Shown piece by piece: positions 2,271-50,549 of a stretch of 64,000 nucleotides of DNA. The stretch is taken from contig OZ281501.1 of the NCBI GenBank assembly GCA_965637545.1, positions 19,034,001 to 19,098,000 of the forward strand, given 5' to 3'. Both the position numbers and the translations under genes were made by a program. Each line of letters opens with the position of its first letter. The first letter of the stretch is position 1. The notes under the pieces were generated by a model, which was not told the origin of the DNA, searched no databases, and was given only the letters and a program-made list of their open reading frames with translations. Origin of the DNA: Phallusia mammillata (taxonomy: Eukaryota).

Positions 2271-4424
2271 TACCTAAGCTTGTTTATCTCTTGACAATCA
2301 TTGGTGCGTCATATTGTCATGACAACCACCACCAAAAGTATTTGGTTTGTCGGCCGCTTGACAGTTTGTTTGAGCAACAACCTTCAAGTTCTTTGAATCA
2401 GTCAACACTAAGAGGTCCTCCAGGTCGGCCAGGTGAACGCGGACCTCCTGGCGATAAAGGTGAGGAAGGTCAACCTGGGGGCCCAGGAATGCAAGGGGTC
2501 AAAGGTGGAAGAGGTGAACGTGGTTTACAGGGACAAGAAGGACCACCCGGGCCAGTTGGACCCCAACCATTGGTGAATTGGACCCGAATCGACAATCGTA
2601 TACATGAAATAATTAATGGTAAGACTTTCAGCTATAGTTTTCTGTTATTGATAACATAATAAATTAAATTATAGTCAGTATTCTGATTATGGAATGGACA
2701 ATGTATTTCCAAAACTGTATAATGCCAATACATTTAATATCTGCTACTGTAATTGCACTATAATTGGTTGTGAAAAAGCTTTCAAATGATGCGTTAAATA
2801 GAAAGTAACAGAGTATGCAATAACTCTGTTTTATTGTCACTGGTGAGTTTTCCAGAAATACACGGTGGCAGAATTACAACTTTGACGTCACGCATGTAGT
2901 GGGTAAATCCCAACACAAGGGACAAACTTTCTACAGGAGCTGGTTAACTTGTTGTTTTCCTCGCAAACATCATTGTTTCTTACGTACAATCAATCCTTAC
3001 ATTAAGCTTCTCAAGGCGGGTTCTTAACTGTGTGTATGTAGCTCGATTTGTAGAGCGCCAGTCCTGAAAAGACTCCTGTCGTGGGTTCTTACCGGGCTGT
3101 TTCGGTATGACACCTACAGTAGGCCTGGCGTAATATAATATCTATAAGAGTGTGCCGTTATCGCTGGTCTGCATCGACGCTTCAGGGATGATCCCAGCTA
3201 TTCTTCTAAGTCTTAAACTGATTATACTAGTCAATCAGGTCATTCCCTGACTACGAAGCTAAAATGTGCAGCATACGAGGCAGGCAACGGTGCCTGTGAT
3301 TCGACTTTTCTCGGATTCTCCACTAAGGCTTAGTTGATAGAGTGCGAGTCCCGAAAAGACACCTGTCGTTGGTTCCAACCCACCGCTTGCTGGATTTTTC
3401 TTTTTTCAACAGCCGTCCAAAAATTAGGCGTAAAATCTATGTTCTGTCTTTTAGTGTCTAGTACCCTATTCTGCAGTAGTTTTCACAATTCCTTTTACAT
3501 AATCGTATTGTGCGAGACAATCAAAAAGCATTCACTGACAAACAATTACATATTTGACGTCTTGAACACTTGACAGTTGAAGCTAGTAACCATTTTCTAG
3601 CGTTTGGCGTAATATCGTTTAAATGAACTTGCTCTAAAAGTCGAATTACCTCAAGTTTAGCGCAATTGCAACAACATTGACACAAAAGACAAATAAATTC
3701 GCCACTCCAACAAAATCATTATTTGTAAAGGTGAAATTTCTTTCTATTGGCAGAACAAAGAATATGTACGGGAGTCGTGTACAGAGATCATTGCTACTGG
3801 CTACCACGGATTGTTGCAGCATACTATGGTAACGGTGGAAAGTCGGCAGCTGCGAATGTTTGTAGTTCTAACGGAGCCACATTGGTTGACATAGAGACTG
3901 AAGAAATGTACGAAGTACTTTACAAATACATACAGAAAGCTTGGCAGATGTACGTTGATCTACCGACACTCGAGTTTGTTGAAGTGTGGTTGGCATCAAG
4001 TTACACGGTGAGTGTTTCATTTCACAAGCGGCAATTTATTGTGAATGGAACTAAGTTAACAAAACAAACGAAATAAATTTAAATTAATAAAATACGTAAC
4101 AGCCGAGTGAATGCGATAATTGTTTAACTTTGATAATCGTTTAATTAGATTTTTAGTAGAAACAAATTATTTGAGAATCCTGTCGCAAATAAATAGATTA
4201 GCTGGTTTCATGTTGTGGCCAATCAACGTTGATTTGTTTAGAATGGAAATGCTGTGAGCTCCACAGTTGGGAGTGTTTACACGCGATGGTATAGCGGCAA
4301 CTATCCTAACAACAACCCCGGTATTACATGGTTTGTGGGTCAACCTACACGATCTGCGTCAAACACCGGGATGCAGACAACTAACGAGAGTGATACACAA
4401 CCTCTGCCGTTCTGTCGCCTGTAA
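2271..4424 (+). pseudogene. Collectin-like paralog 1, 5'-truncated with no ATG; exons ~2271-2618, 3754-4007, 4242-4424; long collagen (17 Gly-X-Y)
   Basis: Same exon structure and GT-AG sites as paralogs 2-5. The ATG and promoter are replaced by unrelated repeat-unit sequence at ~2261, with an in-frame TGA at 2252-2254 and no ATG before the signal-peptide remnant. Exons 2-3 are open and end ...PFCRL*. Confidence 0.75.
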
Positions 4425-5439
4425 ATTCACTTTCAAATTGTTTTGTAGAAACAATAATATATTTACACGTCATTGATTAAAACTAAAGACTTTGTTAAAA
4501 TTAATCCAAATTAAATGATCGCACCGACAAATATCGCAATACCGTTGCTTTTTCCCGTTTTTTTTGGTAAACTAACCCAAATGATACAGGTATAACTTTG
4601 TCACAAACGCTATATTGTTAAATTTTGAGAAAACTCCTTTGTTGAAAATGTATTGAAACCTGCGCTGTGTCGGGTTTGGCGCTGGATTGGAAAAATATCG
4701 AGTTTGGGATGTGAGTAGAAATAGTAGAGTAACGACCAACTTCTATCTAAATGACAATTCACATTTATTTTGTTGTTGTTTGTTTAATTTTTTCCACAGC
4801 GCGTTGTACAAAACTTGTTGTTATTTCATGGTTAAGTAATAAATTCACTTGGGTGTTGCAAATATGTGTTTTATGCGGTTTAAAGTAAAACCAGTAGGAG
4901 ATTGTGTTTGACAGCCGCAAGAGCATGAAGGCCAACATCTTATGTTGAATGTGCACAAAAAGCAGATCAAAGTTTCAATTCTACATTAAATGCTGCGTCT
5001 GATTTTATCATTAAAAATATCTTACGTCTTAAGCATTGTTATACGTTGAAAATAGGTTTAAAATAATTAAATCACAAACAAAAATTTTGAACATTTTATT
5101 TACACTCGAAGTCATTTAACGACCCCTAACGGCTCCACGTTTGTTAACTTCTAATTAAACATTGCTAGAATCTCTTTTGACAAATCACCAAATATGTTAT
5201 AAATACCCTTAGGTGTGTAATAAGCAAGTACAGAATGACGTCATAAACCAAGTAGACGCTGCAGACGAGAATGACGTCATTAGTCGAGTAAGCAAGCGAA
5301 CGACAAGCATCTTCGTACAAAGGCAAAAGGAACCAAAATGTACTAATTTACGTAGGCCTAGCTTTTTTCTTGCATTTCATTGCTGTATTTTACTTTATTT
5401 GTCTGTTTTTTTATCGTTTGAAACGATTTTTTTCATTTT

Positions 5440-7947: not shown

Positions 7948-10270
7948 TACTTACTACGCGCATAAACGGCCCCTTTACTTAATTTATAAATGTTTAATCT
8001 TAAAGCGAATAACGGCATTTAATTGTTTAACTCTGAAACCGGTTTTGACACACTAAATGAGAACCTTGCAACCATCCAACGGACCTGAACGGAACTGAAG
8101 CCCCAGTGGTCAGTGAAGGGCAGCTTGTTTTCCCTTTGTCGCATGCGGGCGCATAATGCATTGTGACGAACCTTGTAGTAAAGACGTCCATTTAGGACAA
8201 TTGTGTAGGCTTTGTTTAAGTCTACAGCGGTGGGTCCTGGCCCGCGAGGCAATTTTTCATGACACGCCAAACGGTTTGTGCGTTCATATTAGCGTGCGTA
8301 TATTTATTAGCTACATTAGAGTTTTATGAAATAAATAACGTTCCATGTATGATACTTGGAAATTTGTAAGAATTGTTAATTTGTCTGCAGCTGAGTGGAG
8401 ACGACGGGATAAGGAAGCGACGATGATCAGATCCGTATATCCGGACCAAAGGTGTTGACTGGAGTTGATCAATCAACAAATCAGCAAGCACCAGGAGGAG
8501 GTTAAAATGTTTGTTTTGTCGCTTGAGTGACGTAACCATTAGTGACGTCATGTTGGTAACGTCATTCATCCCCTTTAAGTTCTTATTTAAAGTATCTTAT
8601 TCCATTTTGAACATGCTTATTACCGCATAGGTTAAATATATGTTTGTGTGCCTGTATTAATTAAGCGGTGAATGATTCCAAATAAGTTTTCAGTCTGTAA
8701 TGATACGCTACTGTTGTCTCCATCTCTCGTACTGAGTCTCTGGTGACTCGTGATTATACAATAAACAACACAGTTTAGGAGGGTAATAGGGTTACTATAA
8801 AAATTTTTGCGAGAAAATGAGGGTTTTTTGGTGAAATAAATTTCCACGTTTGTTGCACATTGCTATTGTTTAAACGTTGTTTGTCTGCAGCTGAGTGAGA
8901 CGACAGGATGGTCCATCGGTCGGATGGTCCATCGGTACACCACATTTACTTGGATTACGCAAGAAACAACTCAATCTCTCCATCGAACAAGAAACTTAAA
9001 TTCCGATAAGTCAGGTTTCGAGTCTGTCGTGTAATTCACCAAAGTCGTTCAAACAAAATCATTTCAATGTAACTCCATACTTTTAATATAATTTCATGAC
9101 TTGATAGTAGTTTTTACTTTATGGACCCTATTGTAGATTTTTTACTGTTTTTTATAAATTTTTTATGTGCATCTCCCGTAATCGGGTTTTGCTTTCATAA
9201 CTTGGACGACATAAAATGCACGACAAACTCTTTGCATGTGTTTGGTCTAGCTGTTTGTTTTTAATGTGTTTACGCTAAATGTGTTAGGTTAATTGGGAAC
9301 TTAAAAGGGGGTCCACGATGGCGGTTTTACTTGGTTGGTTTACAAAACCTCTACATTAGCCCCCATTCACAAATAACAAGTTTAAGCTAACTAGGTAATT
9401 TGTCATGGAACCTAATTGTTCATAAGTTAACTCCCATGTTTATAAGTAGTGTTAATTTTAACGGTATAATGATTCATTACTGCTAAGGTCACTTCCATAC
9501 CCTTGTTAAAAATTAGTTTCAAAACTAAATACTGTCGTTAAAAGTGTTATTAAATCACAGTTGGTCTTTCAAACTTCTGATCTGAATTACACAGTATTTT
9601 ATAACCCATAGTTTTTGCTCCCTTCTATCGCGTTCATGCCCAACTGCATTCGTTGACTTTACGCCTTCGTACTTAACCACGGTTTTAAACCAGGACTATA
9701 TCCTAAACTGAAATACAATACAATACAAACTTAAATTTTTAACCATCTAATCTAATCTTAGTTTAGTTTTTGAATGTATGTAATTACTTTACTAATCGCC
9801 ATTACTATTCCTAGATCCCAATATGCACAACTGCAGCGTTAAAAGGTTACGACCGAGCATTGATCAGCTAAATTGTGTCAAATACTCGATCTATTAGATT
9901 TGTTTTAATTGCGTTTAAACAACCATTTGTCCAAGGTACTTGATCCACCAGTTTTTGAGCTTTTAAACCGAATATCATGGGTAATAATGATAAAGTTAAT
10001 GGGATACCCGGAACCTTGTTTCATAATCTATTTTTATTTACTTTTACTTCACTTCTCTTTTATTCTTTACATTCCTTGCATTTTTATTTTGCCGCATTAT
10101 ATAATATGGGCGATTCGTGCACTGTCTCCCATATTATTTTTGCGGATTTTAAACAAGGTTCCGGGGTTATTTTTGCGCATAAACTGTAATATAAACTTCG
10201 ATAAAAACGTAATTACGCCTTTACCGCATCTTCGCATAGTTTATTTTTTCTGGTGGATCAAATATTCTAT

Positions 10271-10459
10271 CCCCTAACACGTTACGTCATAGTAGGGTAA
10301 TTCCCATGAGCGCGCCCCCCTCTACTAACAAGTTACGTCATATTAGGGAAATTCCCAAAAGCGCGTCCCCCTCCCCCTAACGTGATACCTCATAGTAGGG
10401 GATTTCCCTAAAGCACATTTTCCTCCCCTAACACTTTACGTCAAAGTAGGGGAGTTCCT
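10271..10459. promoter_or_regulatory. Tandem array (4 x ~51 bp) of CRE/ATF-like TTACGTCA plus NF-kB-like GGGRNWTYCC sites
   Basis: kB-like sites at 10295, 10346, 10398 and 10449; TTACGTCA at 10282, 10333 and 10436. Confidence 0.6.
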
Positions 10460-14042: not shown

Positions 14043-14140
14043 ATACACATTACGTTATTGCTGGTTTAATACACATTACATCATTGCTGGTTTAATACAC
14101 ATTACATCATTGCTGGTTTAATACGCATTACATCATTGTT
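14043..14140. repeat. 26-bp minisatellite (TACACATTACATCATTGCTGGTTTAA)n; copy number 1-4 among paralog upstream regions
   Basis: About 4 units here, ~3 at 25149-25230 and 47338-47420, and 1 at ~12958. Confidence 0.8.
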
Positions 14141-15115: not shown

Positions 15116-16891
15116 ATGTATTTGTTTCCTAAGCTTGTTTTCCTCTTGACAATCATCGATGCGTCATATTGTCATGACAACCACCAGCAAAAATATTTGG
15201 TTTGTCGGCCACTTGACAGTTTGTTTGAGCAACAACTTTCAAGTTCATTGAATCAGTCAACACTAAGAGGACCTCCAGGTCGGCCAGGTAAACGCGGACC
15301 TCCTGGTTATAAAGGTGACCAAGGTCAACCTGGTCCGGTTGGACCCCAGTCATTGCTGAATTGGACCCGAATCGACAATCGTATAAGTGAAATAATTAAT
15401 GGTAAGACTTTAGTTTTCTTTTGTTAATAAGATAAGAAATTTTAACCGCTGTCCGAATTCTTAATATAAACCTGACAACAAAATCAAAGCTTAAAACACG
15501 AATTTACAAAACTATGTTATGCCAATACATTTACTAATTGCTACTGCAAATGCACTAAAATTGGTTGTGGAAATGCTTTCAAATAATGCGTCAAATAGTA
15601 AGTAACCAAGTATGCAATAATTCTGAAACTTTTAGTGTCACTGGTGAGTTCCCAGAAATACATGGTGGCAGAATTACAGCTTTGACGTCACGCATGTAGC
15701 AGGTAAATCCCAACACAAGTGACAAACTTCCTACAGGAGCTGGTTAACTGGTTGTTTTCCTCGCAAACTCCAGTATTTCTTAAATATAATCCTCACATAT
15801 CAAATCCTCATGGGGGTTCATCACTGAGCCGGTGTAGTTTAAAGCGCGAGTCCTGGAAAGACTCCTTTTGTGGATTCGAATCCCACCACAGGCTAGATTT
15901 TTCTTTTTCCAATAGCCGTCCGAAATTCAGGCGTAAATGCTATGTTTTGAATTTTAGCGTCTAGTACCCTATTCTGCAGTAGTTTTCACAGTTGTTTTTA
16001 CATAAATGCATCAACAATCGAAAAGCATTAACTGACAAACATTTACTTATTTGACGTCTTAAATATTGAAGTTAATAACCATCTTTAACAATTTGGCGCA
16101 ATATCGTGCAAACAAATTTGCTCTAAAATTGGAATTACCTCAAATTTAGCACAGTTGCGACAACATTGACACAAACAAGCCAATAAATTTGCCACTCCGA
16201 CAATGTCAGTCATTATTTGTAAAGGTGAAACTTCTTTCTATTTGCAGAACAAAGAAACTGTACAGGAGTCGTGTACAGAGATCATTGCTACTGGCTACCG
16301 TGGATTGTTGCAACATGGAGTGGTCACGCTGGAAAGTCGGCAGCTGCATATGTTTGTAGTTCTTACGGAGCCACATTGGTTGACATAGAGACTAAAGAAC
16401 AATATGATGTACTTTACAAATACATTGGAAAAGCTTGGCAGATGTACGTTGATCAACCGACATACGATTTTGTTCGAGTGTGGTTGGCATCAAGTTACAC
16501 GGTGAGTGTTTCATTTCTTACAATCGACAACTCATTGTGAAGGGAACAGTGTTAACAAAGACAAACAAATTTATATTGAGGAACTACTTAAATAGTTGTT
16601 TAACTTTTACTATTTTATAGGTGTTTAGTAAAAACAAATAGTTTAAGTAAGTCAGTCGTAAATAGATTGATTAGCTGGTTTCATGTTGTGGCCAATCAAC
16701 GTTAATTTGTTTAGAATGGAAATGCGGTGAGCTCCACAGGTGGGAGCGTTTACACACGATGGTATAGCGGCTATCCTAACAACAACCCTGGTATCGGATG
16801 GATTGTGAGAGAACCTACATATTCTGGGGCTTCCGGGATGCAGACAATTACCGAGAGTTATCAAAACGCTCTGCCGTTCTGTCGCCTGTAA
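15116..16891 (+). CDS. Collectin-like protein paralog 2; join(15116-15401,16248-16501,16715-16891), 238 aa, short collagen (9 Gly-X-Y)
   Basis: Signal peptide [19 protein letters not shown]; collagen [27 protein letters not shown]; neck [13 protein letters not shown]; CTLD-like C..HCYW...[15 protein letters not shown]...W..GYP..FCRL. Donors G/gtaag and ACG/gtgag and acceptors cag/ and tag/ give a continuous frame. Confidence 0.85.
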
Positions 16892-19800
16892 ATTACCTTT
16901 TAAATTGTTTTTCAGAAACAATAAAATATTCACTAGCCTGTTTCTGTGATAAATTAATTAAACCCAAAGACTTTGTCAAGCTTAATTCAAGTTAAATGAT
17001 CGCATCGGCAAATATCGCAATATCGTTGCCTTTTTTCAAGTTTTTGTTAACCTAACCCAAATGTACACATGTTTGTTAACTAACCGATATAACTTTGTCA
17101 CAAACGGTATTTTGTAAATATTTAAAAACTCACAATTTAAAATGTATTGAAACCTGCGCTTTGTCGGGTTTTTGCTGGAGTAGAAAAATATCGAGTTTGG
17201 GATGTGAGGAAAAATAATAGAGTATAAAGACCAGCTTCGGTCTAAATGACAATTAACATTTATTTTGGTGTTGTTTGGTAATTTTTCTGCCGCAGCGCGT
17301 TGTACCAAATTTTTAAACTTGTTGTTATTTCATTGTTAATAAATTCAATTGGGTGTTGCAAATGTGTGTTTTATGCGGTTTAAAGTAAAACCAGTAGGAT
17401 ATTGGTTTGACAGCAGCAAGAGCATGAAGACCAACATCTTAGGTTGAATGTGCACAAAAAGTAGATCAAAGTTTCAATTCTACATTAAATGCTGCGTCTA
17501 AGTTTAACATTAAAGCATCATACGTTTTCTTTTCAAGGTTGCAGGGCAACTGTCGCACGTCATGTATGTTTGAAGGTAGTTTTTTCGCCAATGTCGCAAG
17601 CAAGTAACTTTTTAATTTTATAAGGCTCTCGTTTCATGATCCAAAGATCGTGTGTTCAAATCCCTCAAAATCCGAAAATCGCTTAAACATGATAAGTTAA
17701 TGAATAATAACGTCTCAATTTTATTTCATGTTAAAACGTTTCTTCAATCTTGTCCATGTAAAACTCTCACAAACAAGCAAAGTTTAATGTTGCAAACTTG
17801 CTGCAAACAAGCAGGTGATTGGTTGGCCAAAACACGTGACGGCTTGATTGAGCAAACGAGAACCCCGCAGGCAACTGAATTGGGGATTCCGAAGCTGACT
17901 TGCAGGGGCACCAAGGTTGATATAAAAGCAAAGAGCTGATTCCACGCGCTTTTAAACACGTTTTCCTGGGAGCGGATGATAGAAGCTGCAGGTAAGTTTG
18001 GGTTGAATAAATAAGATATGTGGTGTTAGATGTTATAATGCTTAAACGCCATTGTGTATTCACATACATTTTGTAACATAGGGTATTTACTGTATTGTTT
18101 TAATGTATAAGTATAAATACCAAACATTGTAATGATTACGCATATAGCGATTTGTTTTAATCTCTGAATTGTATAACCTAATCATGTACACGTGGTAACA
18201 AAGTAACAAATAGGTTAGCAACCGAATTAACTAATTACTGCATAGTTGTTGAACTCAAACGTGTGATGGCCTGTTCCATCGAGAAACATGTATCTTATCA
18301 TATGCTCGTTATAACGTTACGTATATTAGGTATAGTTTGAATATATAAGGTTAAAACCGAATAAATTACTGATTATCGCATATAATTGTGCGAGATATCA
18401 AACGTAACGTGTAGTAAACTGTCGCTTTTACAAACTGTATTGAAAGTGTAGTTGGTTTAGGAATGAATAGCTAGCTTCCTAGTTAGCTTATCAGAGCGGT
18501 TGGTAGCAATCCTTGTATGCTTTGGGAAACAACTGCTTTTGCCTTAGGTTAATTGGTTTCTGTGTTTTATGCCTTTCGAAACTGCTGATGTGAAGCAACC
18601 GTCTTTAACTGAATGCTCGAGTGATACTGTTTGTAGTTGTGCGTTTTGTCTTCCCACTGGTAAAGTTAATTTCTCTTAAAAGCAGCACTACGCTCGTTTT
18701 CAATATATTAAGATCAGGCCACACTCGTTTATGAATTAGTATACGCCAGGTTTATATGAGGCTTCATACCGAATTAGATGCTTGGGGGACCAGATTTACT
18801 CGGTATAACGCCTCTAATATGCCTGGCGTAATCTATTTCTATTACAGAGTAACAATTTATTTTCTCACTATAACTAGAGAAATCTATTGATAATCGTAAT
18901 GCAAGTTTGTAGGGCATATGCACAATTTATTTGGTTATAAATATCTTGAATTATTGATGTTTACTTTACACTAATTGCAACTTACATATTTTTCAGCTGT
19001 TACGTCACAATGTCGTGATTGATGACGATGGCTCTGTATGACGTCATATTGACAAAACCGGTTTGTTAATTGTTTCTGCTCGGGACGATTTTGAAACACT
19101 TAGGGATTTACCCAGAACCTTGTTTTATTTTTCCTATTTTTTTGTTTACTTTTTTTCTCTCCCCTTTTATTCTTTTTTATTCTGAACTTGTTTTTTTCGC
19201 CGCATTATATAATATCGAGGGTGTGCACGGCCCTTTATATTATTTTTGCGGATTTTTGAAACAAGGTTTCTGGGTTACTTACTACGCGCATAAACGGCAC
19301 CTTAACTTAGTTTATTAACGTTTAATAACGGCATTTAATTGTTTAACTCTGAAACCGGTTTTGTCACACTAAATGACAACTTTGCAACCATCCAACGAAC
19401 CTGAACGGAACTGAAGCCCCAGTGGTGAGTTTTAGAAGGGCAACTTGTTTTCCCTTTGTCGCATGCGGGCGCATAATGCGTTGTGGCGAACCTTCTATAG
19501 ATAAAAGTTTCTATTTATATACTGAAGACGTCCGTTTAGGACAATTGTATAGGCTTTGTTTGAGTCTACAGCGTTGGGTCCTGGCCCGCGAGGCAATTTT
19601 TCATGGCACGCCAAGCGGTTTGTGGGTTCATATTAGCGTGCGTATATTTATTAGCTACATTAAGAGTTTTACGAAATAAATAACGTCACATGTATGTTAT
19701 TGGGTTTTTATTAGTATTGTTGATTTGACTGCAGCTGAGTGGAGACGACGGGATAAGGAAGCGACGATGATCAGATTCATATATCCGGACCAAAGGAGTT

Positions 19801-22463
19801 GACTTGAGTTGATCAACCAACAAATCCGCAAGTACCAGGAACAGGTTACTATGTTTGTTTTGTCGCTTGAGTGACGTAACCATTAGTGACGTCATGTTGG
19901 TTACGTCATTCACCCCCTTTAAGTTCTTATTGAAAGTATCTTATTCCCTTCTGAAGATGCCTATTACTGCATATGTGAAATATATGTTTGTGTGCCTGTA
20001 TTAATTAAAGGGTGAATGATTCCAGATAAGTTTTCAGTCAGTAATGATACGCGACTGTTGTCTCCATCTCTCGTACTGAGTCTCTGGTGACTCGTGATTA
20101 TACAATAAACAACACAGATTATGTGGATAATAAGGGTACTTTTTCGAGAAAATGAGGGTTTTTTGGTGAAATAAATTTCCACGTTTGTTGCACATTGCTG
20201 TGTTTTAAACGTTGTTTGTCTGCAGCTGAGTGAGACGACAGGATGGACCATCGGTCGGGTCCAGATCTACAGGAGTTGACGAACGAATCAGCAAACATTG
20301 GAAACAACGACATCAGGAAAGGAACGAGGTAACTTTGTTGAAATGAATCTAAACTTGTACGCCAGGCTTAATATAGATGTTGTAAGAAACCCAAGCGCAC
20401 ATCCATGCATTTTTATATGGGGAAGCGTGAAGTGGAAAAATCTAGCCTGCGGTGGGATTCGAACCCATGATGTGTGTTGTTCTTTAAATCGCAGTTTTTA
20501 TAAATTAGCCACTTAGGGTGATTTTGACAACACTAGTAAGCAAAGCACTAAAGTATGGTTCGTAACAGACAAGCAAAACACACTACATTTTTCAACCTAC
20601 CCATGTTGTCAAACCAAGTCGCGGTGCCCTTTGCGCCGCTCGCTTCTCCAGTGAGATCCCAACTTCTGTGTCACTTGTTAGTAGTCTTAAAGGTAGTCTA
20701 CTTCACTTACCCTACGTTCCCCATATATGTATTACCGTTGGCTTATTTTTAACCTAGGGATTTTCGTAACCTCTACCTGATCCTGTGTCACTAATGTAGT
20801 GTTTGTGTTATTCTCGGGAATGCTTGGGGAGACCGGCTGATTCGGTATAACGCCTTAAATAGGCCTGTTGTACAATGATTTATAAATGAGTGTGCCGTGA
20901 TCGCTGGTCTGCAAGGACGCTTCAGGGCTGATCCCAGTTACAAGTTAACATATCAGTAATTTATGTATTTTTAGGCATTCCAACCAGCTATATATTTTAT
21001 GAACTTTCCATGTAACTTATAACAGACGCAGGCCTAGCAAAACTACAACTTTACATTTATTTCCAGGAACTACACCACATTTACTTGGATTACGCAAGAA
21101 ACAACTCATTCTCTCCATCGAACAAGAAACTTAAATTCCGATAAGTCACATTTCGAGTCTGTCGTGTAATTTACCAAAGTGGTTCCAAGAGAATAATTTT
21201 AATTTAACTCCAAACTTTTAATATAATTTCACGACTTGATAGTAGTTTTTACTTTATGGACCCTATTGTAGATTTTTTACTGTTTTTTATAAACTTTTTA
21301 TTTGCATGTCCCGTTATCGGGTTTTGCTTCCAAAACTTGGACGACATAAAATGCACGACAAACTCTTTGCATGTGTTTGGACTAACTGTGTGTTTTTAAT
21401 TTGTTTAGGCTAATTGTTCTTGTGTTATACTTGTTTTGGCTAAACTTGTAAGGCTAATTGTTTTTGTGTTAAACTGTGTTTAGGCTAAATGTGTTAGGCT
21501 AATTGGGAATTTAAAGGGGGGGTCCACGATGGCGGTTTAACTTGGTTAGTTTACAAAACCTCTACATTAGCCCCCATTCACAAATAACAAGTTTAAGCTA
21601 ACTAGGTAATTTGTCATGGAACCTAATTTTTGTTATATAACTCCCATGTTTATAAGTAGTGTTAATTTTAACAGTACAATATTTACTACATTACTACTAA
21701 GGCCCCTTCTATGCCCCGGTTACAAATTGGTTTTAAAACTAAAGGCCGTCGTTAAAAGTGCTATTAAACCATAGTTGGATAACCTTAGTTTTTAAAATCC
21801 CTGACCTTAATAACATCAAATTATTGTATAACCTATAGTTTTTAGGGCCCTTTTATCCAATGTCACAGTTGCGCCTTGGTACTTAAGCCACAGTTTTTAA
21901 ACCGTATTCTTTTCCTAAACTGAAATACTTTACATAAATTTTTAACCATCTAATCTTAGTTTAGTCTTTCATTTTTTATGTTTATAATTACTTTACTAAT
22001 CGCCATTACTATTCCCAGATTCCAATATACCCAGCTACAATGTGGGAAGTTAAGACCGAGGATTGGGCGGTTAAACTGTCAAAAAATCCTTCCTTGGTTT
22101 TAAGTACGTTTAAATCCCATTTATCAAAGGTACTTGATCCACCAGTTTTTACGCTTTCAACTCGAATATCATGGGTAATAATGATAAAGTTAATGGGATA
22201 CCCGGAACCTTGTTTCATGATCTATTTTTATTTTCTTTTACTTCACTTCTCTTTTATTCTTTACAATCCTTGCAATTTTATTTTGCCGCATTATATAATA
22301 TGGGCGATTCGTGCACTGTCTCCCATATTATTTTTGCGGATTTTAAACAAGGTTCCGGGATTATTTTTGCGCATAAACTGTGATATAAATTTCAAAAAAA
22401 CGTAATTACGTCTTTACCGGAACTTTGCATAGTTATATTTTTCTGGTGGACCAAATACTCTGT

Positions 22464-22650
22464 CCCCTAACACCTTACGTCGTAGTAGGGAAATTCCCAT
22501 TAGCGCGCCCCCTCTCCTAACAAGTTACGTCATATTAGGGAAATTCCCAAAAGCGCGTCCCCTCCCCCTAATGTGATACCTCATAGTAGGGAAATTCCCT
22601 ACAGCGCCTTTTCCTCCCCTAACACGTTACGTCAAAGTAGGGGAATTCCT
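22464..22650. promoter_or_regulatory. Second kB/CRE tandem array
   Basis: GGGAAATTCCC at 22488, 22538 and 22589; GGGGAATTCC at 22640. Confidence 0.6.

Positions 22651-23054: not shown

Positions 23055-23085
<31 letters not shown>
22915..23085. repeat. (GT)n and (TA)n microsatellites (also at ~10710-10880 and 43445-43570)
   Basis: Directly visible dinucleotide runs. Confidence 0.85.
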
Positions 23086-24759: not shown

Positions 24760-26263
24760 CTGCAAAACACAGAGAAAAAAATCAGGCAGTGGAAATACCG
24801 TTTGTGCACGTCTGACTTTGCTCGCTTGAATTTGTCTGCAGCCAAGGAAAGCTGCGGTTACGTCATTTCAGCCAGACTCGCTGGAAACGTATTTAAGCGA
24901 GCAAAAGTCATTTCTGCAAAAATATTACGCCTTGCTGGGAACACTTTATTGTAACTATATATCACATGTTTCCCTTTATTGTGATTTTTTATCGTATCTT
25001 TACTGAATTATATCATACCACAATTGATTTTTTCAGGTGTATAAAAGCAGAACCAACCTTATTATTTTTACAAACGTTTTATTTTCACAAACAAAACAAC
25101 ACAAATTTAAATGCAGATTCGAATTCATCAGACATATCAGCACACATGATACACATTACGCCATTGCTACGGTTTAATACACATTACATCATTGCTGGTT
25201 TAATATACATTACATTATTGGTGGTTTAAACAAGTGCTCACACGAAAGTCCCGAGGACATCTTAACAGTTTTATGTGACGTTTGCGGTGGAACAATGGTG
25301 CTTTGTCGACACGAGCTGTTTACAGGTTCACCTTGTCCCACTGAGATGAACAAAGCGGCTACTTAGGCAGGTGTATGAATAAGCTATTGTCAGTTTGACA
25401 AGAAAGTATTTTTACCCAATTAAGTAACACTCGATATAACTTGAACTGCATGCGGGATCAAATGCAACTTTGTTTGTTAACAAATCCAGCCAGCAGGCGA
25501 TCTGCTTAAATTTTTTCTCAAAGTTGGGTGGCTGAAAAATTTTTGGGGTCGGCGATTTTTGTAAGGAAGTCCTCTACCATTTAATATTATTTTATCTGCA
25601 GTTTGAGGCACAAAATAATTTGTTATAATTTACACACCTTTGACATATCACCATTTTTGTAGCAGACATTATAACGTTTTAACTTGTTTTGCGTAATTTT
25701 GCATAACTAGCTCAAATTCTGCAAGTCAATTTTATTTTTTCTTAATTACATACTCAGGTTTAAGGACCGCAAGCCCTAGATATAATGACAAAGTGACTGT
25801 TCTGAAAAAATAATAAATAATTTGAGAACCACTGAGTTAAATGAATATAAATCGCAGAGGCTTAACTTTCACAGTGGTCGATTGGAGAAAAACAACGATT
25901 GGCGGTTAATGAAACAGTCTGCAGCATATTTCGAAACTAATAAACGGGCATGGATTTATTGTAAGGCAAACAATCGGCAGAAACGTTTTGCCAAGGCAGC
26001 AAAACAGTTTTGTGACATTCGCAGTGGAACAATGGTGCTTTGTCTACACGAGCTGTTTACAGGTTCACCTTGTTCCAATGAGATGAACAAAGCGGCTACT
26101 CAGGCAGGTGTGTGAATAAGTGATTGTCTTTCCAACAAATTATCGGTTACCGTGATGGCATTACGTCAGTTTGTTATGAAGCAAGCCACTGTTTGTTACG
26201 CCGTCCGTGGAAATCTGTCGTCGCTTTGTCGAAGTTTTTTACAGGCTCTCCCTTCAACTGCAC

Positions 26264-26455: not shown

Positions 26456-28936
26456 ATGTACTTGTTACCTAAGCTTGTTTTCCTCTTGACAATCATTGGT
26501 GCGTCATATTGTCATGACAACCACCAGCAAAAATATTTGGTTTGTCGGCCGCTTGACAGTTTGTTTGAGCAACAACCTTCAAGTTATTTGAATCAGTCAA
26601 CACTAAGAGGACCTCCAGGTCGGCCAGGTAAACGCGGTCCTCCCGGTTTTAAAGGTGAGCAAGGTCAACCTGGAGGCCCAGGAATGCAAGGGGTCAAAGG
26701 TGGAAGGGGTGAACGTGGTTTGCAGGGCCCAGAAGGACCACCCGGGCCGGTTGGACCCCAACCATTGCTGAATTGGACCCGAATCGACAATCGTATACAT
26801 GAAATAATTAATGGTAAGACCTTCAGCTAATGATTTCTGTTATCGATAACATAGGAAAGGTATCGATAGCATAGAAAATCTTAATTTAGAATTAACAACA
26901 ATATATTTGATTAAATTAAGAAAACGTATTTACAAAAGTATATTATTCTAATACATTCAATAATTGCTACTGCAAATGCACTAAAATTGGTAATGATAAA
27001 GCTTTCAAATGATGCTTTAAATCGAATGTAACAAAGTGTGCAACAATTTTGTAACGTATACTTTCACTGGCGAGTTTCCCAGAAATACACGGTGGCAGAA
27101 ATACAGCTTTGACGTCATACATGCAGTGGGTAAATCCCAACACAAGTGACAAACTTCTTACAGGAGTTGGTTAACTGGTTGTTTTCCTCGCAAACATCAA
27201 CCTTTCTTACGTACAATTCTTACGTATGAGACATCGAAACGTTGGCATAGTAGAATAAAAAACTGCCGAAAGAGCTGAAAATTTTGTTGGTACAATCCTT
27301 ACATATCAAACATTTGACAGTTGAAGCTAGTAACTATTTTCGGCGCTATCTCGTGTACATGCTCTAAAAGTCGAATTGCCTCCAATTTAGCACTGTTCCA
27401 ACAACATTGACACAAACAGACCAATAAGTTCCGGCCAAAACACCAACACTGTCAGTCAATATTGGAATGGCAAAATTTCTCTCTATTGGCAGAACAAAGA
27501 GTATGTAAATTTCGGCGGGTTTACTACTGAAGCTTAGTTAAAAGAGCGTGAGTCCCAAAAAGACCCCTGTCGTGGGTTCAAATCCCACCGCAGGCTGGAT
27601 TTTTTTTTCTAAACATTCTATGTTCTGAATTTTAGCATCTTGTACCCTAATCTGCAGTAGTTTTCACAATTCGTTTCACATAATCGTATTGTGCGGAAAT
27701 ATGCAACCTGGTTGACGAAACGCCTTTTCAGTATTTTTATAGAAAATAATAGCTTTCGCATAATCTAATGTCTTAGATTTGTCTGTGATGTCACAAGCTG
27801 CCCTTAGATCATCAATATGCGTAAACAAGCGCATCTACAAGTGAAATAAATCTTGAATGTTGTAGTGAAGGAAGAAATATCGCGGAAAGCTTATTTTATT
27901 CAGCTTGGACCGTCATTCTCACGACTCTGCAAGATAAAATTACAACTACCATTCCTTAAAAGTAAAAGTTTGAACACCACTGTCGTAGGTCTGGGAATAG
28001 TCTATGCGGCCTACACGAGTGTCGATAGAACGTTGAGTGGCTCTTATGAACAGAAAGGTTCTTCACCCCTGTCTCAAACATTTGACAGTTGAAGCTAGTT
28101 ACCATATTCTAGCGTTTGGCGCAAATTCGTGTAAATAAACTTCTCTTAAAGTCGAATTACCTTAACTTAAGCGCAGTTGCAACAACATTCACACAAACAG
28201 ACCAATAAATTCGCCACTCTAACAAATTCATTATTTGTAAAGATGAAATTTCTTTCTGTTGGCAGAACAAAGAAAGTGTACAGGAGTGGTGTACAGAGAT
28301 CATTGCTACTGGCTCCCGCAGATTGTTGCGAAATTCAGTGGTCACGGTGGAAAGTCGGCAGCTGCAAATGTTTGTAGTGCCTACGGTGCCACATTGGTTG
28401 ACATAGAAACTGAAGAACAATATGATGTTCTATACAAATACATTCAGAAAGCTTGGCTGATGTACGTTGATTACCCGACACGCGATTATGTTCAAGTGTG
28501 GTTGGCATCAAGTTACACGGTGAGTGTTTCATTTCTTACAAGCGGCCATTTATTGTGAAGGAAACAAAGCAAAATTAAAATTGAGAAAACACGTCACATA
28601 AGTATGTTCTTAAGATCCGAATGAACGCGATAATTGTTTAATTTTGATAATTTTGTAACTAGATGTTTAGTACAAACAAAGTATTTAAGTAAGCCTGTGG
28701 TGAATACATAAATTAGCTGGTTTCAGGTTGTGGCCAATCGACGTTAATCTGTTTAGAATGGAAATGCGGTGAGCTCCACAGGTGCTAGTGTTTACACACA
28801 ATGGTATAGCAGCTTCTTTCCTAACAACAGTCCTGGTATCCTTTGGGAAGTGGGAAAACCTACACGGACTGGGTCTACCGGAATGTGGACAAATAGCGAG
28901 AGTTATGCATCCGCTCTGCCGTTCTGTCGCCTGTAA
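26456..28936 (+). CDS. Collectin-like protein paralog 3; join(26456-26813,28266-28519,28757-28936), 263 aa, long collagen (17 Gly-X-Y)
   Basis: Same architecture as paralog 2. Splice phases 1 and 0 give an open frame; exon 3 reads [59 protein letters not shown]. Confidence 0.85.
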
Positions 28937-33040: not shown

Positions 33041-35048
33041 ATGTACTTGTTAACTAAGCTTTTTTTCCTCTTGACAATCATTGATGCGTCATATTGTCAT
33101 GACAACCACCAGCAAAAATATTTGGTTTGTCGGCCGCTTGACAGTTTGTTTGAGCAACAACCTTCAAGTTTTTTGAATCAGTCGACACTAAGAGGACCTC
33201 CAGGTCGGCCAGGTGATCGCGGACCTCCCGGGGATAAAGGTGACCAGGGTCAACCTGGTCCTATTGGACCCCAATCATTGCTGAATTGGACCCGAATCGA
33301 CAATCGTATACATGAAATAATTAAGGGTAAGACTGTGTTTTCTGTTATTGATAACATAGGAATTTAAATTGAATTCTAATTATTGAATGGACAACAAAAT
33401 CATTGCCTACAAAACATATTTACACAACTATGTGATGCCAATACCATTAATAATTGCTACTGCAAATGCACTAAAATTGGTAGTGGAAATGCTTTTAAAC
33501 AATGCATTAAATACAAAGTAACCAAGTATGCAATAATTCTGTAACTTTTACTGTCACTGGCGAGTTTCCCAGAAATACACGGAATCAGAATTACAGCTTT
33601 GACGTCACGCATGTAGTGGATAAATCCCAACACAAGTGACAAACTTCCTACAGGAGCTACTTAACTGGTTGTTTTCCTCGGAATCATCAGTGTTTCTTAC
33701 ATACAATTCTCACATAAGCTACACAGGTTCTCCACTGAACCTGTGTAGCTCAGTTGGCAGAGCGCGAGTCCCAGAAACACTCCTGTCGTGGGTTCGAATC
33801 CCGGCTGATTCCGTATGACTTTCAATAGGCCTGGTGTAATATGATTTCTTCATGAGTAATCGGTCTGCATCGATTGTGATCGGTCTGCATCGACGCTTTA
33901 GGGATCCCAGCTATTTATCTTTGACTCAACTGATTACTGGTCGATCTGGCAATCCCTTACTACAAAGCTAACATGTGATAGGTAGAAAACGGTGCTTGTG
34001 ATTCGACTTTCAGAAAGACTCCTGTCGTGAATTCGAATCCCACCGCAAGCAGGATTTTTCTTTTTTCAACTGCAGTCCGGAATTTTGGCATAAAATTTAT
34101 GTTCTGAATTTCTACTACCCTAATCTGCAGTAGTTTTCACAATTCCTTTTACATAATAGTTTTGTGTGGAACAATTGCGCATTCACTGACAAACAATTAC
34201 ATATTTGACGTCTTGAACATTTGACAGTTGAAGCTAGTAACCATTTTCGGCGCTATCTCGTGTACATATATTTGCTCTAAAATGCGAATTACATCCCATT
34301 TAGCACTGTTCCAACAAAATTGACACAAGCAGACCAATAAGTTCCCCATACCAACACTGTCAGTCAATATTTGAATGGCAAAATTTCTTTCTATTGGCAG
34401 AGCAAAGAAACTGTACAGGAGTCGTGTACAGAGATCATTGCTACTGGCTACCGTGGACTATTGTTGCGAAATTCAGTGGTCACGGTGGAAAGTCGGCAGC
34501 TGCAAATGTTTGTAGTTCCCACGGAGCCACATTGGTTGACATAGAGACTAAAGAACAATATGATGTACTTTACAAATACATTGGGAAAGCTTGGCTGATG
34601 TACGTTAATCACCCGACATACGATTTTGTTCGAGTGTGGTTGGCATCAAGTTACACGGTGAGTGTTTCATTTCTTACAAGCGACAATTCATTGCAAAGAG
34701 AACAGTGTTATCAAAGCAAACAAATTTAAATTGAGGAACTACGTAATAGTTGTTTAACTTTAACAATGTTATAGATGTTTAGTAAAAACAAATACTTTAA
34801 GTAAGTCAGTCGTAAATAGATTGATTATCTGGTTTCATGTTGTGGCTAATCAACGTTAATTTGTTTAGAATGGAAATGCGGTGAGCTCCACAGGTGGGAG
34901 CGTTTACACACAATGGTATAGCAGCAGCTATCCTAGCAACAGCCCTGGTATCGGATGGCTTGTGGGGCAACCTACATATTCTGGGTCTTCCGGGATGCAG
35001 ACAATTACCGAGGGTTATCAAAACGCTCTGCCGTTCTGTCGCCTGTAA
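33041..35048 (+). CDS. Collectin-like protein paralog 4; join(33041-33326,34401-34657,34869-35048), 240 aa, short collagen
   Basis: Same architecture, with a 3-nt insertion in exon 2 (PWTIV). Open frame to TAA at 35046-35048. Confidence 0.85.
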
Positions 35049-42990: not shown

Positions 42991-43074
42991 TTTTGTATTT
43001 GTATCCCTTTGTGACACCAGTAGCCATGTTTTTAATATGACTGCAAATTGTGCGCACACATGACAGGTCCTTGC

Positions 43075-43198
43075 GTTATAGTAGGGGAATTGCCTTAAGC
43101 GCCTTTTCCTTCCCCTAACACTTTACATCATAGTAGGGGAATTCCCTAAAGCGCCTTTTCCTCCCCTAACACGTTACGTCAAAGTAGGGGAGTTCCTG
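43075..43198. promoter_or_regulatory. Third kB/CRE array (3 units; 5' part replaced by the RPS2-containing insert)
   Basis: GGGGAATTGCC at 43084, GGGGAATTCCC at 43136, GGGGAGTTCC at 43187. Confidence 0.55.
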
Positions 43199-43443: not shown

Positions 43444-43478
<35 letters not shown>

Positions 43479-46811: not shown

Positions 46812-46972
46812 ATATGAATTTAATGTTGCTGGATATTCCAGGTATGCGATGGCAAAGTCATTATTTATCATATGTCATTGAGTTATAACTGGAATGAGGC
46901 AAGAAGCTTGAAACGGAGATATTCTGTCCTGGCTCCTTCCAATTAATAGTTCCCAACACCGCTATAACGCCG
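46812..46972 (-). pseudogene. Decayed trypsin-like protease exon (Asp region)
   Basis: Paralogous to 12228-12384; cag/ and /gtaagt retained. Confidence 0.65.
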
Positions 46973-48429
46973 CTGCAAAACATAGAGAAAAAATCAGGCA
47001 ATATGTGCACGTCTGATTTTTGCTCGCTTGAATACGTCTGCAGCCAAGAAAAGCTGTAGTTACGTCATGTAGTTTGCAGCCAGACTCGATGGAAAGTCAT
47101 TTCTGCATAACTTACATATTACGCCTAGCTGTGGGAACATTTTTTTGTATGATATTACATGTATCTCTTTATTGTTATGTTTTATTATATCTTTACTGAA
47201 TTGTATCATACCACAATTGTTTTTTTCAGTTGTATAGAAGCACAACCAAGCATATTAGTTTTGCAAAAATTTTATTTTCACAAACGAAAACAACACAAAC
47301 TTAAATGTAGATTCGAATTCATCAGTTTATTTCAGCATACACATTACGCACGTCGTAGTTGGTTTAATACGCATTACGTCGTAGCTGGTTTAATACGCAT
47401 TACGTCATTGTTGGGTTAAACCAGTGTTTACTCGTGGAAGTGCCGAGGACAGCAAAACAGTTGTGTGACATTTGCGGTGGAACAATGGTGCTTTGTCTAC
47501 ACGAGCTGTTTACAGGTTCACCTTGTCTCACTGATATGAACATAGCGGCGTCTCAAGCAGATGTATGAATAAGGGATTGTCTTTCCAACAAATTATCGAT
47601 TACAGTGATGTGATTACGTCAGTTTGACATTAAGCAAGTCATTGTTTGTTACGGCGTCCTTTGCAACTCATGTTTACCCACAAGTTTGAGGTAGCGCAAC
47701 ATTTTCTGGCTTATTTACAGTTTGCCTGATGAAACACATGAACCAAGAAAGTATTTTTGCTCAATTACGTAACACTCGATATAACTTGAAATACATGCGG
47801 GATCAAATGCAACTTTGTTTGTTTACAAATCCAGTCAGCAGGCGATCTGCTCAAATTTTGCTGTAATATATTTGTTTTAACTTTATAGAGTTGATTTTTG
47901 CATTGTAAAGAACAGAGTTTCCCAAAGTTAGCTTGAAAAATATTTTCGGTCGCCGATTTTAGTAACGAAGTCTTCTACTTTTAATATTGATTTGCAGCCT
48001 TTATTTTTCCCACAGCTTAAGTCATACTTCCATGTTTATGACACACTTAAATCTTTTCCATAATTTAAAAACCTTTGACATATCACAATATTTGTAGCAG
48101 ACATTATTACAGTTTTACTTGGAGTAGTGTTAAATTCCAAAATCCCCAGAAACACAATCGAATTTAGTCACATTTGCAGTGTGAAAGACTAGCGTCGCTT
48201 TGTCGAAGTTATTTACAGGATTTCCCTCCAAATGCACTGACGTCATGGAACAAACACCGACAATGCGAGTAGTCGAAGAAATAGGCGATTGTTTCAGCAT
48301 CAGTTGCCATGATAACAGCACGAGAGCCGTTTTTGAAGAAAGGAGCCTTTTTTCTTGAGGCACTTTTGTCATTTTACAAATGCCTTCAAGTCACCAAAAA
48401 TAATCAGTTGCTTTTAGTCTTCGGGCAGG

Positions 48430-50549
48430 ATGTACTTGTTACCTAAGCTTGTTTTTCTCTTGACAATCATTGGTGCGTCACATTGCCATGACAACCACCG
48501 GCAAAAATATTTGGTTTGTCGGCCGCTTGACAGTTTGTTTGAGCAACAACCTTCAAGTTCTTTGAATCAGTCAACACTAAGAGGACCTCCAGGTCGGCCA
48601 GGTAAACGCGGACCTCCCGGAGATAAAGGTGACCAGGGTCAACCTGGTCCGGTTGGACCCCAACCACTGTTGAATTGGACCCGAATCGACAATCGTATAC
48701 ATGAAATAATTAATGGTAAGACTTTCAGAAACAATTAATGGTAAGACTAATGCTGTCTGTTATTGATAACATGGGAGTTTAAACTGTTGTCCGAATTCTA
48801 ATTATAGAATAGACCAGGGGTGTCAAACTCGCGGCCCGCGGGCCGCATGCGGCCCACGAAGCCCTCCAATGCGGCCCACGAACACTCAACAACAATTGCA
48901 GAATTTTGTCAGATGTTTATCTAATTATAATACATTTTTACTACTTTTCATAGTGAAAGCTATGATTTAAACAGAGTTTTACAGAAATTAAATTTATGAA
49001 TCAAAATTCATATGTTATGAATAGATACGATAGTAATTAAACCGTTCCTCAAGGCGTTAAGTTTCAGTCAAGGGCGTACAACCTGCTGTCATAATAGAAT
49101 TTCTATAAGAGTGTACCATGATCGCTGGTCTGCAACGACGCTTCAGGGATGGTTCCAGTTATTTATCAATGTCTTAACTGATTACTGGCCTATCTGGCGA
49201 TCCCCTAGTACGAAGCTGACATGTACAGAGGCAAACAACGGTGCTTGTGATTCGACTTTCGGCGTTTTTTCCACTGAGTTTGCGTAGCTCAGTTGGTAGA
49301 GCGCGAGTCCCGAAAAGACTCCTGTCGTGGGTTCGAAACCCACCGCAGGCTGGATGTTTCTTTTTTCAACAGCCGTCCGGAATTTAGGCGTAAAATCTAT
49401 GTTCTAAATTTTAGCGTCTATAGTACCCTAAACTGCGCTATACCCTATTGTGCGCAACAATCGAAAAGTATTCACTGACAAACAATTGCATATTTTACGA
49501 TTTGAACATTTGACAGAAGCTAATAACCATGTTTCTAGCGTTTGGCGCAATATCGTGCAAATAAACGTTCTTTAAAAGTCGATGTACCTCAAATTTAGCG
49601 CAGTTGCAGCAACATTGACACAAAAGACCAATAAATTCGCTACACTACCAATACCATTATTTGTAAAAGGTGAAATTTCTTTCTATTGGCAGAAAAAAGA
49701 GTGTGTACTGGAGTCGTGTACAGAGATCATTGCTACTGGCTACCGTGGATTGTTGCAACATACAGTGGTCACGGTGGAAAGTCGGCAGCTGCAAATGTTT
49801 GTAGTTCTTACGGAGCCACACTGGTTGACATAGAGACTAAAGAACAATATGATGTACTTTACAAATACATTCAGAAATCTTGGCAGATGTACGTTGATAA
49901 ACCAACATACGATTTTGTTCGAGTGTGGTTGACATCAAGTTACACGGTGAGTGTTTCATTTCTTACAAGCGGCAATTTATTTATTGTGAACAGTGTTTTT
50001 TTTAAGGTGTTTTTCAAATTTTTCCAGCGGTTTCCCAAAATTTGCCAGTAGCCTAAAAAATAATTCGTTTGAGCAAATATGGCTATTTTTTGGTATTTAA
50101 ATGAAACACTTGCGGTCTCTTGAAACTACTTAGCGGTCACTCAAACCAAACCTTAAAAAAAACCTGATTGTAAAGAAAACAATGTAAAAAAAACAATGTT
50201 AAAATTGAGGAAATACGTTATATCTGAGCCGAGTGAATGCGATAATTGTTTAACTTTTCTAATTGTTCAATTATATGTTTAGTACAAACATATTATTTCA
50301 GTAAGCCTGTTTACGAATACATAGATTAGCTGGTTTCATGTTTTGGCCAATCAACGTTGATTTGTTTAGAATGGAAATGCGGTGAGCTCCACAGGTGGGA
50401 GTGTTTACACACGATGGTATAGCGGCAACTATCCTAACAGCAACCCCGGTATCGCATGGTTTGTGGGGAAACCTACACATTTTGGATCTACCGGGATGTA
50501 CACAACTAGCGAGAGTGATTCAAGCCCTCTGCCATTCTGTTGCCTGTAA
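48430..50549 (+). CDS. Collectin-like protein paralog 5; join(48430-48715,49693-49946,50370-50549), 239 aa, short collagen, C-terminus PFCCL
   Basis: Same architecture, canonical splice sites, open frame to TAA at 50547-50549. Confidence 0.85.
48815..49070 (+). mobile_element. 5' fragment of a hAT-Charlie-like element in collectin-5 intron 1
   Basis: CAGGGGTGTCAAACTCGCGGCCCGCGGGCCGCATGCGGCCC is a typical Charlie terminus. The right end is not found; it replaces intron sequence present in the other paralogs. Confidence 0.65.
49278..49351 (+). pseudogene. tRNA-like sequence (Phe-GAA-like pseudo-tRNA or SINE head) in collectin intron 1
   Basis: A box TAGCTCAGTTGGTAGAGC; stem GAGTC/GACTC with 7-nt loop CCGAAAA; B box GTGGGTTCGAAACCCAC; acceptor GTTTGCG/CGCAGGC; oligo-T downstream. 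Decayed copies at ~3030, 3330, 15830, 27530, 33740, 34010 and on the minus strand at ~20443, 40729. Confidence 0.6.
49991..50166. mobile_element. hAT MITE in collectin-5 intron 2
   Basis: CAGTGTTTTTTTTAAGG / CCTTAAAAAAAACCTG; TSD ATTGTGAA/ATTGTAAA; absent from the other paralogs. Confidence 0.75.

Follow-up and report, generated by a model that had tools for sequence, protein, structure and literature searches.

We analysed a 64,000-nucleotide stretch of the Phallusia mammillata genome (hereafter the window), which spans positions 19,034,001–19,098,000 of the 19.79-Mb contig OZ281501.1 (C8 below) and carries a tandem array of genes for collagen-stalked proteins with C-type lectin-like domains (CTLDs). 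The window contains no N, and one paralog locus used (L029) has a 200-N gap. From stop-to-stop frames and the flanking DNA, we modelled five genes, g1 to g5, which lie head-to-tail on the forward strand and have three exons each. All 15 peptides quoted by the initial annotation for three variable patches were found in these genes, on this strand and at the expected places. Intron 1 is in phase 1 (G/GTAAGA...CAG/) and intron 2 in phase 0 (ACG/GTGAGT...TTTAG/), with canonical GT..AG borders in all five genes. The annotation had noted in-frame indels only, and indeed the frames of g1–g5 are all open and every length difference is in frame.

The exon 1 product comprises a hydrophobic leader, a two-Cys segment, a Gly-X-Y run and a short neck, with exons 2 and 3 together encoding the head. 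In g1, exon 1 (2255–2618, open from 2255) encodes the leader, the two-Cys N-terminal segment, 17 Gly-X-Y triplets and the neck, exon 2 (3754–4007, with a phase 1 acceptor) the first half of the lectin-like domain, and exon 3 (4242–4424) the second half plus the stop codon. The exons of g2 lie at 15116–15401 (ATG, signal peptide, N-terminal Cys pair, nine triplets including the motif P-G-K-R-G-P, and neck), 16248–16501 and 16715–16891, with TATATA at 15061 and AATAAA at 16920–16925. Those of g3 occupy 26456–26813 (17 triplets), 28266–28519 and 28757–28936. The g4 gene consists of exons at 33041–33326 (nine triplets, with Asp replacing the Lys of P-G-K-R-G-P), 34401–34657, whose first patch has one extra codon, and 34869–35048; g5 follows with exons at 48430–48715 (nine triplets), 49693–49946 and 50370–50549, the last ending in ...FCCL.

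A polyadenylation signal is present ~30 bases past the stop codon in each gene, the g1 version being altered (AATAAT for AATAAA). Unlike the other four genes, g1 has no in-frame ATG, and a duplicated ACCTAAGCT stands in place of its start region (2200–2290). The TATA-like box of g1 is degenerate, with TATATA lost, and AATAAA is lost as well (4425–4481), yet the frame is open through all three exons. Gene and spacer were duplicated together, and within the window these units measure 11–15 kb and are 77–90% identical. The tandem array described by the initial annotation is thus made of whole duplicated units, and it extends beyond the five genes listed there.

Transcript records supported the gene models. 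An exhaustive profile search with alignment A1 (exon 2 of 23 paralogs) returned 82 relatives, of which the best-matching cluster holds CAB3266018 and CAB3266020, both named ‘pulmonary surfactant-associated protein D-like’. CAB3266020 (P0083 below; 263 residues, P. mammillata, transcript-derived) matches g3 exon by exon, with 116/119 residues identical in exon 1, 79/84 in exon 2 and 59/59 in exon 3, where the next best paralog reaches 43/59. Its junctions fall exactly as inferred, so the splice model is right and an allele of g3 is transcribed; the match also marks the genome as P. mammillata or an extremely close species (Ascidiidae, Phlebobranchia). Four of the five exon 2 differences between P0083 and g3 lie in the first variable patch, where P0083 matches the patch of paralogs on contigs C4 and C7. 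Selected sites that vary between alleles, gene conversion over a short tract, or a chimera formed in transcript assembly could each account for this. The second protein of the cluster, P0001, is an intron-retaining product of a C7 copy. When the open frame that surrounds g4 exon 2 was used as the query of a word-index search for homologues, no match was obtained, probably owing to the length window of the search and to divergence.

Further pieces came from sequencing runs that we guessed to be RNA. An exact 165-base contig covers 33141–33305 in g4 exon 1, a second piece has an overhang of the long-collagen g3 type, and a contig end or overhang encodes the first patch of g1 type (PRIVAAYY). With reads mapped to g4, introns and spacers were uncovered in these runs, one 30-base repeat excepted, and this pattern of covered exon pieces beside bare introns and spacers suggests that several paralogs are probably transcribed. 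The exact fragments are short because contigs break at paralog differences, and such contigs cannot rank expression. The initial annotation had left expression to be checked; transcripts of the family exist, P0001 and P0083 both being transcript-derived.

The five genes belong to a much larger family. Matches to exon 2 number at least 60 across the 240-Mb assembly; 54 are open and six (~10%) contain stops. The local array on C8 comprises at least eight head-to-tail copies (19.03–19.12 Mb), a second cluster holds at least 10 copies at 30.82–31.00 Mb of the 31.34-Mb contig C4, and C7 has several more clusters within its first 6 Mb. Most of the family is near chromosome ends; the copies that diverge most have internal positions on C1, C2 and C3, those on C1 and C2 with 46–58% identity in exon 2. 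The youngest and most alike members (C8 19.03–19.12, C4 30.82–31.00 and C7 0.39–0.96 Mb) are located no more than ~1 Mb from contig ends. On trees, C8, C4 and C7 copies are interspersed, and the pattern suggests expansion and exchange among chromosome ends. Exons 2 and 3 were modelled in 43 copies, from which 34 intact heads were aligned and a core set of 27 was used for codon models; 20 further C7 copies are represented by ±1.5 kb loci only, or absent.

At the N-terminus, a hydrophobic leader and two Cys residues (C-x12-C) ahead of the collagen could be read directly from the sequence in g2–g5, and g1 retains the segment. The stalk has nine triplets in g2, g4 and g5 and 17 in g1 and g3, which makes the latter 24 residues longer. 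The long form, as in g3, scores above the Pfam Collagen threshold (E-value 8e-8, 32.3 bits) and the short form falls below it (E-value 3e-5, 24 bits against 27.2). Family-wide, stalks of 0, 9, 14, 17, 20 or 28 triplets occur, with a 33-residue module as the building block. In four paralogs (L034, L036, L039 and L047, at C8:17.78, C4:30.96 and 30.98, and C7:0.93 Mb) there is no collagen and the N-terminal segment joins the neck directly. The collagen, which the initial annotation had listed with signal, neck and CTLD framework as near-identical, therefore differs between the genes, given the longer stalks of g1 and g3. Several C4 copies have a second neck-like fragment ~270 bases downstream of exon 1.

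To define the fold of the head, we modelled P0083 residues 108–263 with AlphaFold2 (alignment A2), obtaining a mean predicted local distance difference test (pLDDT) score of 92.4 and a predicted template-modelling (pTM) score of 0.84. The model places a neck helix of ~12 residues just before the head, after which strands and two helices follow in CTLD order. Foldseek returned CTLDs only (probability 1.0, TM 0.6–0.72), with tetranectin (1htn) first. Also ranking high were trimeric structures of neck plus carbohydrate-recognition domain from SP-A, MBL, SP-D and CL-K1; CD69 was among the best matches too, and NKG2D, CLEC9A and NKR-P1B were among the matches. At the sequence level, the whole-head profile (A2) matched mannose-receptor CTLD4 (E-value 3.6e-6) and E-selectin (4.9e-6), and the weak matches of exon 2 in the Protein Data Bank (PDB) were all CTLDs, CD69 being the best. 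The Pfam Lectin_C (PF00059) threshold of 22.6 bits was not reached by the exons or by any full-length relative tried: exon 2 scored 14–16 bits, P0083, P0005, P0008 and P0016 scored 15–20 bits, and P0003 and P0010 gave no match.

A closer examination of the 34 heads revealed that the canonical binding motifs are absent. The EPN/QPD position reads Y/F/H/N/Q/E-P-variable and the WND strand reads x-T-x, and in the profile alignment the G-y-P-s of the family aligns to the G-E-P-N of the mannose receptor. None of the 34 heads has the inner disulfide, and past the WLAS strand no copy has a Cys until the final F-C, the only CTLD cysteines kept being the outer pair and the N-terminal long-form pair. 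With no EPN/QPD, WND or inner disulfide, there is no canonical calcium or sugar site. As judged from alignment and predicted structure, the head is a true but very divergent CTLD from which the calcium/sugar ligands and the inner disulfide have been lost. This agrees with the initial description of the proteins as collectin-like but non-canonical, in that collagen, a predicted neck helix and a CTLD fold are combined with the loss of these three features.

The P-G-K-R-G-P motif, conserved also in relatives from Ciona, Clavelina and metagenomes, is present in 14 of 19 stalked copies, including g2, g3 and g5. Its Lys is replaced by Glu in g1 and three other copies, and by Asp in g4. In MBL and ficolins, the consensus of the MASP-docking motif has an aliphatic Xaa residue, and in rat MBL replacement of the Lys together with the adjacent aliphatic residue abolished MASP binding (PMC2592599). 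The family motif resembles this docking motif, and by analogy the Glu and Asp variants would not dock.

Across the 34 aligned heads, invariant columns alternate with columns that hold up to 12 different residues. To assess this pattern, we fitted codon site models (Goldman–Yang, F3x4; own implementation) on a fixed IQ-TREE topology, with branch lengths optimised under M0 and then scaled, after aligning exons 2 and 3 separately and concatenating their columns. For the 27 core copies (142 codons), M0 gave a dN/dS ratio (ω) of 1.07, and M2a placed 14.6% of sites at ω = 5.4. Twice the log-likelihood difference (2ΔlnL) was 328 for M1a/M2a, 351 for M7/M8 and 313 for M8a/M8. Of the 142 codons, 18 (six from exon 2, 12 from exon 3) exceeded a posterior of 0.95. 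Fitted separately, with a tree of their own, both exons were still highly significant: in the same order of comparisons, exon 3 gave 184, 196 and 177 (ω 5.4) and exon 2 gave 138, 148 and 134 (ω 6.3). Exon 1, as a negative control in the same pipeline (19 copies), gave ω 0.33, likelihood-ratio statistics of 0.0, 1.8 and 0.0, and no selected sites. The differences between copies had been described as concentrated in a few patches, and this they are, far beyond chance; most of the 18 sites fall inside the three patches and the rest just outside: those of exon 2 adjoin the second patch, and those of exon 3 immediately precede the third (a W-x-S-G-x-P-x-N-x stretch).

A tree-free comparison of all pairs (Nei–Gojobori) gave the same picture. 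The 18 selected sites had dN 0.815 and dS 0.130, the remaining 124 sites dN 0.079 and dS 0.173, and exon 1 dN 0.062 and dS 0.195; the intron 2 distance was 0.19. The neutral rate is equal everywhere, so that purifying selection, rather than homogenisation, explains why the framework is conserved; the hypervariable codons have an ordinary synonymous rate, which speaks against local hypermutation. The pairwise homoplasy index (PHI) test for recombination inside the head gave no signal (p = 0.26). With exon 1, the CTLD exons and intron 2 alike in dS (0.195, 0.17 and 0.19, respectively), a null PHI test and ~10% of copies with stops, birth-and-death rather than concerted evolution is supported, as the initial annotation had proposed. 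Its second proposal, diversifying selection, is borne out by ω ≈ 5.4 on ~15% of sites, the rejection of M8a and the near-zero statistics of exon 1; dN/dS exceeds 1 at localised sites.

The selected codons of g2 start at 16316, 16319, 16439, 16454, 16463 and 16475 in exon 2, and at 16763, 16772, 16778, 16784, 16796, 16802, 16841, 16847, 16850, 16859, 16862 and 16865 in exon 3. In P0083 numbering, the 18 sites are residues 143, 144, 184, 189, 192, 196, 221, 225, 227, 229, 233, 235, 248, 250, 251, 254, 255 and 256. They were placed by profile alignment, by-eye alignment to canonical motifs and the secondary structure of the model. Residues 225 and 227 align to the E and N of the lost EPN, and the strand after EPN contributes two alternate residues, 233 and 235; 248, 250 and 251 lie on or just past the former WND strand, and 254–256 lie in the loop after it. 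On this placement, the twelve exon 3 sites are predicted to be arranged around the classical ligand face of the domain. The six exon 2 sites fall in two family-specific loop extensions, one from strand 1 to helix 1 and the other from helix 2 to the WLAS strand. Tyrosine makes up 18.8% of residues at the selected sites, and Tyr, Trp, Phe and His together 31.5%, compared with 15.6% elsewhere. A composition rich in tyrosine and other aromatic residues is typical of protein-binding surfaces.

Relatives in Ciona intestinalis, retrieved with P0083, form at least nine 90%-identity clusters on two chromosomes. These proteins are 78–92% identical among themselves and 32–36% identical to P0083, and being so much closer to one another than to P0083 they represent a separate expansion. 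At the protein level, entropy in Ciona is 1.42 bits at the columns selected in Phallusia and 0.28 bits elsewhere (Mann–Whitney p = 1e-7), and 10 of the 12 most variable Ciona columns are Phallusia selected sites.

Several repeats accompany the genes. A 51-base tandem unit (2.3–3.7 copies) with a κB-like GGGAAATTCC and a CRE-like TTACGTCA occurs at 10270–10458, 22463–22649 and 43078–43196, that is, 3.8–5.2 kb upstream of g2, g3 and g5, with 16 κB-type matches against 2.3 expected. We considered this array as a family-specific immune enhancer and rejected it: its 40 genomic matches are spread over all eight large contigs, each ~1 Mb or less from a contig end, and the C4 and C7 lectin clusters contain none. 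This distribution makes the unit look like a chromosome-end repeat family and not a lectin-specific enhancer. A 26-base tandem repeat (~3–4 copies, unit starting ATACACATTACATC) at 14043–14138, 25149–25229 and 47337–47419, ~1.1–1.3 kb upstream of the ATG of g2, g3 and g5, was duplicated along with the genes and may lie close to their promoters. In g4 intron 1 (33720–34015), many contigs from a DNA run join ~34010 back to ~33730 with differing filler letters and high depth, which suggests a multi-copy short repeat or mobile element. Just past g5, in the gap to the next family member, is a non-long-terminal-repeat retrotransposon with open frames (51440–55463 and 56372–57471). It comprises a 262-residue frame with a baculovirus-FP-type domain, an endonuclease/exonuclease/phosphatase piece and an 826-residue frame with reverse transcriptase (E-value 1e-35), with a second endonuclease fragment downstream.

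Vertebrate collectins (MBL, SP-A, SP-D and CL-K1/CL-L1) share with the family a signal, a Cys-rich N-terminus, collagen, a helical neck, a C-terminal CTLD and P-G-K-x-G-P. The Phallusia proteins differ in having no canonical calcium/sugar site, 9–28 triplets or none, at least 60 copies, strong positive selection at the former sugar site and Arg in the motif. Ascidian MBL-like collectins are already known (Ciona ‘CiMBL’ and Styela collectin-like proteins; PMC5465252) and come from the same animal group with the same general architecture, and the proteins of the present family carry automatic names, its Ciona homologues being annotated as ‘pulmonary surfactant-associated protein D-like’ or ‘uncharacterized’. 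In the literature that we searched, there was no account of the family size, chromosome-end clustering, sugar-site conversion or selection signal, which is not proof of absence. Tetranectin, the best structural match (1htn), likewise carries its CTLD on a trimerising helix, but is single-copy, collagen-free, calcium-binding and not hypervariable. Calcium-independent CTLDs of natural killer (NK)-cell receptors and their relatives (CD69, NKG2D, Ly49 and CLEC9A) and snake-venom C-type lectin-like proteins have also lost the sugar site, bind protein or other ligands through the same face and form fast-evolving multigene clusters; however, they are type II membrane receptors or venom heterodimers with neither collagen nor a secretory collectin layout. 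A conserved scaffold with a hypervariable binding face is likewise found in the VCBPs of Ciona and amphioxus, snail FREPs and sea-urchin 185/333, and in the targets of diversity-generating retroelements a C-type lectin fold carries the variable residues in its C-terminal part. Those families depend on other domains (Ig, fibrinogen) or on reverse-transcriptase mutagenesis in bacteria and phages, whereas the diversity in Phallusia is germline, between paralogs and alleles, and nothing points to somatic diversification.

Several explanations of the variable heads other than a defence repertoire have to be weighed. If constraint were relaxed or the copies decaying, the patches would be unconstrained loops in redundant or dying genes, and the missing ATG and altered polyadenylation signal of g1, the stops in six of 60 exon-2 matches and the very large redundancy are in keeping with this. 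Neutral drift, however, predicts ω of 1 and not 5.4, the rejection of M8a, whose extra class is fixed at ω = 1 (2ΔlnL 313), speaks against it, and the selected sites have a dN (0.815) four- to sixfold that of introns and synonymous positions. Moreover, the reading frame is open in 54 of 60 exon-2 copies, frame and framework are intact throughout the 34 aligned heads, and Ciona varies at the same columns, which leaves decay extremely improbable. Local hypermutation or patchwise gene conversion between paralogs could instead have mimicked positive selection. The trees of exons 2 and 3 disagree with low bootstrap in the core, copies from C8, C4 and C7 intermix, and P0083 equals g3 in exon 3 but resembles paralogs from other chromosomes in its first patch, so that conversion or a chimeric assembly is possible. 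Set against this are a dS at the selected codons (0.130) that is not above that of the other codons (0.173), the PHI result (p = 0.26), the significance of each exon on its own tree and the null result of exon 1 in the same pipeline; conversion, besides, shuffles variants and cannot create an excess of amino-acid changes. We consider such an artefact improbable.

The heads might also belong to ordinary collectins of MBL type that bind sugars in a calcium-dependent manner, each paralog with its own sugar preference. The database name ‘pulmonary surfactant-associated protein D-like’, the combination of collagen, neck and CTLD, and the structural matches to SP-A, MBL, SP-D and CL-K1 would fit, but the E of EPN has become a hypervariable Y/F/H/N/Q/E, its N is hypervariable too, WND has become x-T-x, the inner disulfide is absent from 34/34 heads and Lectin_C stays below threshold on every full-length member tested; this account is very improbable. 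The chief alternative still standing is another kind of recognition, in which real diversifying selection would serve gamete recognition or self-sterility, allogeneic recognition by haemocytes, or the capture of food particles or symbionts in mucus. Reproductive and allorecognition proteins likewise show ω >1 at binding sites, the sole transcript records come from libraries without a stated tissue, and the κB-like repeat near three genes is a general chromosome-end repeat. Yet the products are secreted, stalked, of oligomer type and encoded by dozens of loci rather than one or two polymorphic ones, and their architecture and P-G-K-R-G-P, found in both Ciona and Phallusia, are those of humoral defence collagens. 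Ascidian MBL-like collectins, though other members, are reported to rise in inflammation (PMC5465252). On balance we regard a non-immune task as unlikely, while allowing it a substantial minority share.

The explanation that we prefer is a large family of secreted, stalked CTLD proteins whose heads are under diversifying selection and which together would provide a germline repertoire for non-self recognition; we give this full explanation a probability of roughly 0.58. Its component parts differ in strength. The architecture, the lost ligands, the framework under purifying selection, the selected codons and the parallel in Ciona we hold with high confidence when taken by themselves, while the step to an immune repertoire is about an even call. 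As a mechanism, stalk and neck would assemble the proteins into trimers or higher oligomers, and the hypervariable face would be the ligand-binding surface, probably calcium-independent and possibly for proteins or other non-sugar ligands. The family would then act as a germline repertoire of soluble non-self recognition molecules, with the collagen stalks passing the signal on, possibly via MASP and complement or via haemocyte receptors.

Several observations weigh against this explanation. The immune role is deduced only from architecture and mode of evolution, and the surface location of the 18 sites comes from sequence alignment only, six of them falling in the two family-specific loops. 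The Xaa residue of the MASP-like motif is Arg in this family and aliphatic in the published consensus; four paralogs have no collagen, and a stalk of nine triplets is very short for a collectin. The codon models are our own code on fixed, poorly resolved trees, three of the selected columns adjoin alignment gaps, and recombination can inflate such tests where, as here, exon 2 and exon 3 trees disagree and core bootstrap is low. The assignment of the further runs as RNA is a guess, and their fragments are short and contain no exon–exon joint.

Ascidians are the sister group of vertebrates. The usual picture of collectins is one of conserved lectins for pattern recognition, in which the sugar pocket is fixed. 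Here the sugar pocket itself is the target of diversification, with ω ~5, a tyrosine-rich composition and a parallel in two ascidian genera. In its boldest form, the proposal is that ascidians maintain a germline repertoire of dozens of soluble collagen-stalked receptors with a lectin fold, in which the ancestral calcium and sugar pocket has been turned into a tyrosine-rich hypervariable paratope, independently diversified at the same positions in Ciona and Phallusia, with a MASP-type lysine, replaced in natural non-docking variants, coupling it to complement; we put this forward tentatively, as a doubtful but plausible extension. If true, it would amount to an antibody-like split between a variable head and a constant effector stalk, without somatic rearrangement. 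Copies also differ in stalk length and in the putative protease-docking lysine, providing natural contrasts for experiments (stalk versus no stalk, Lys versus Glu/Asp). The family would offer a tractable chordate system for asking how germline repertoires of humoral receptors are built and maintained, and could show whether diversified recognition heads once fed the lectin pathway of complement.

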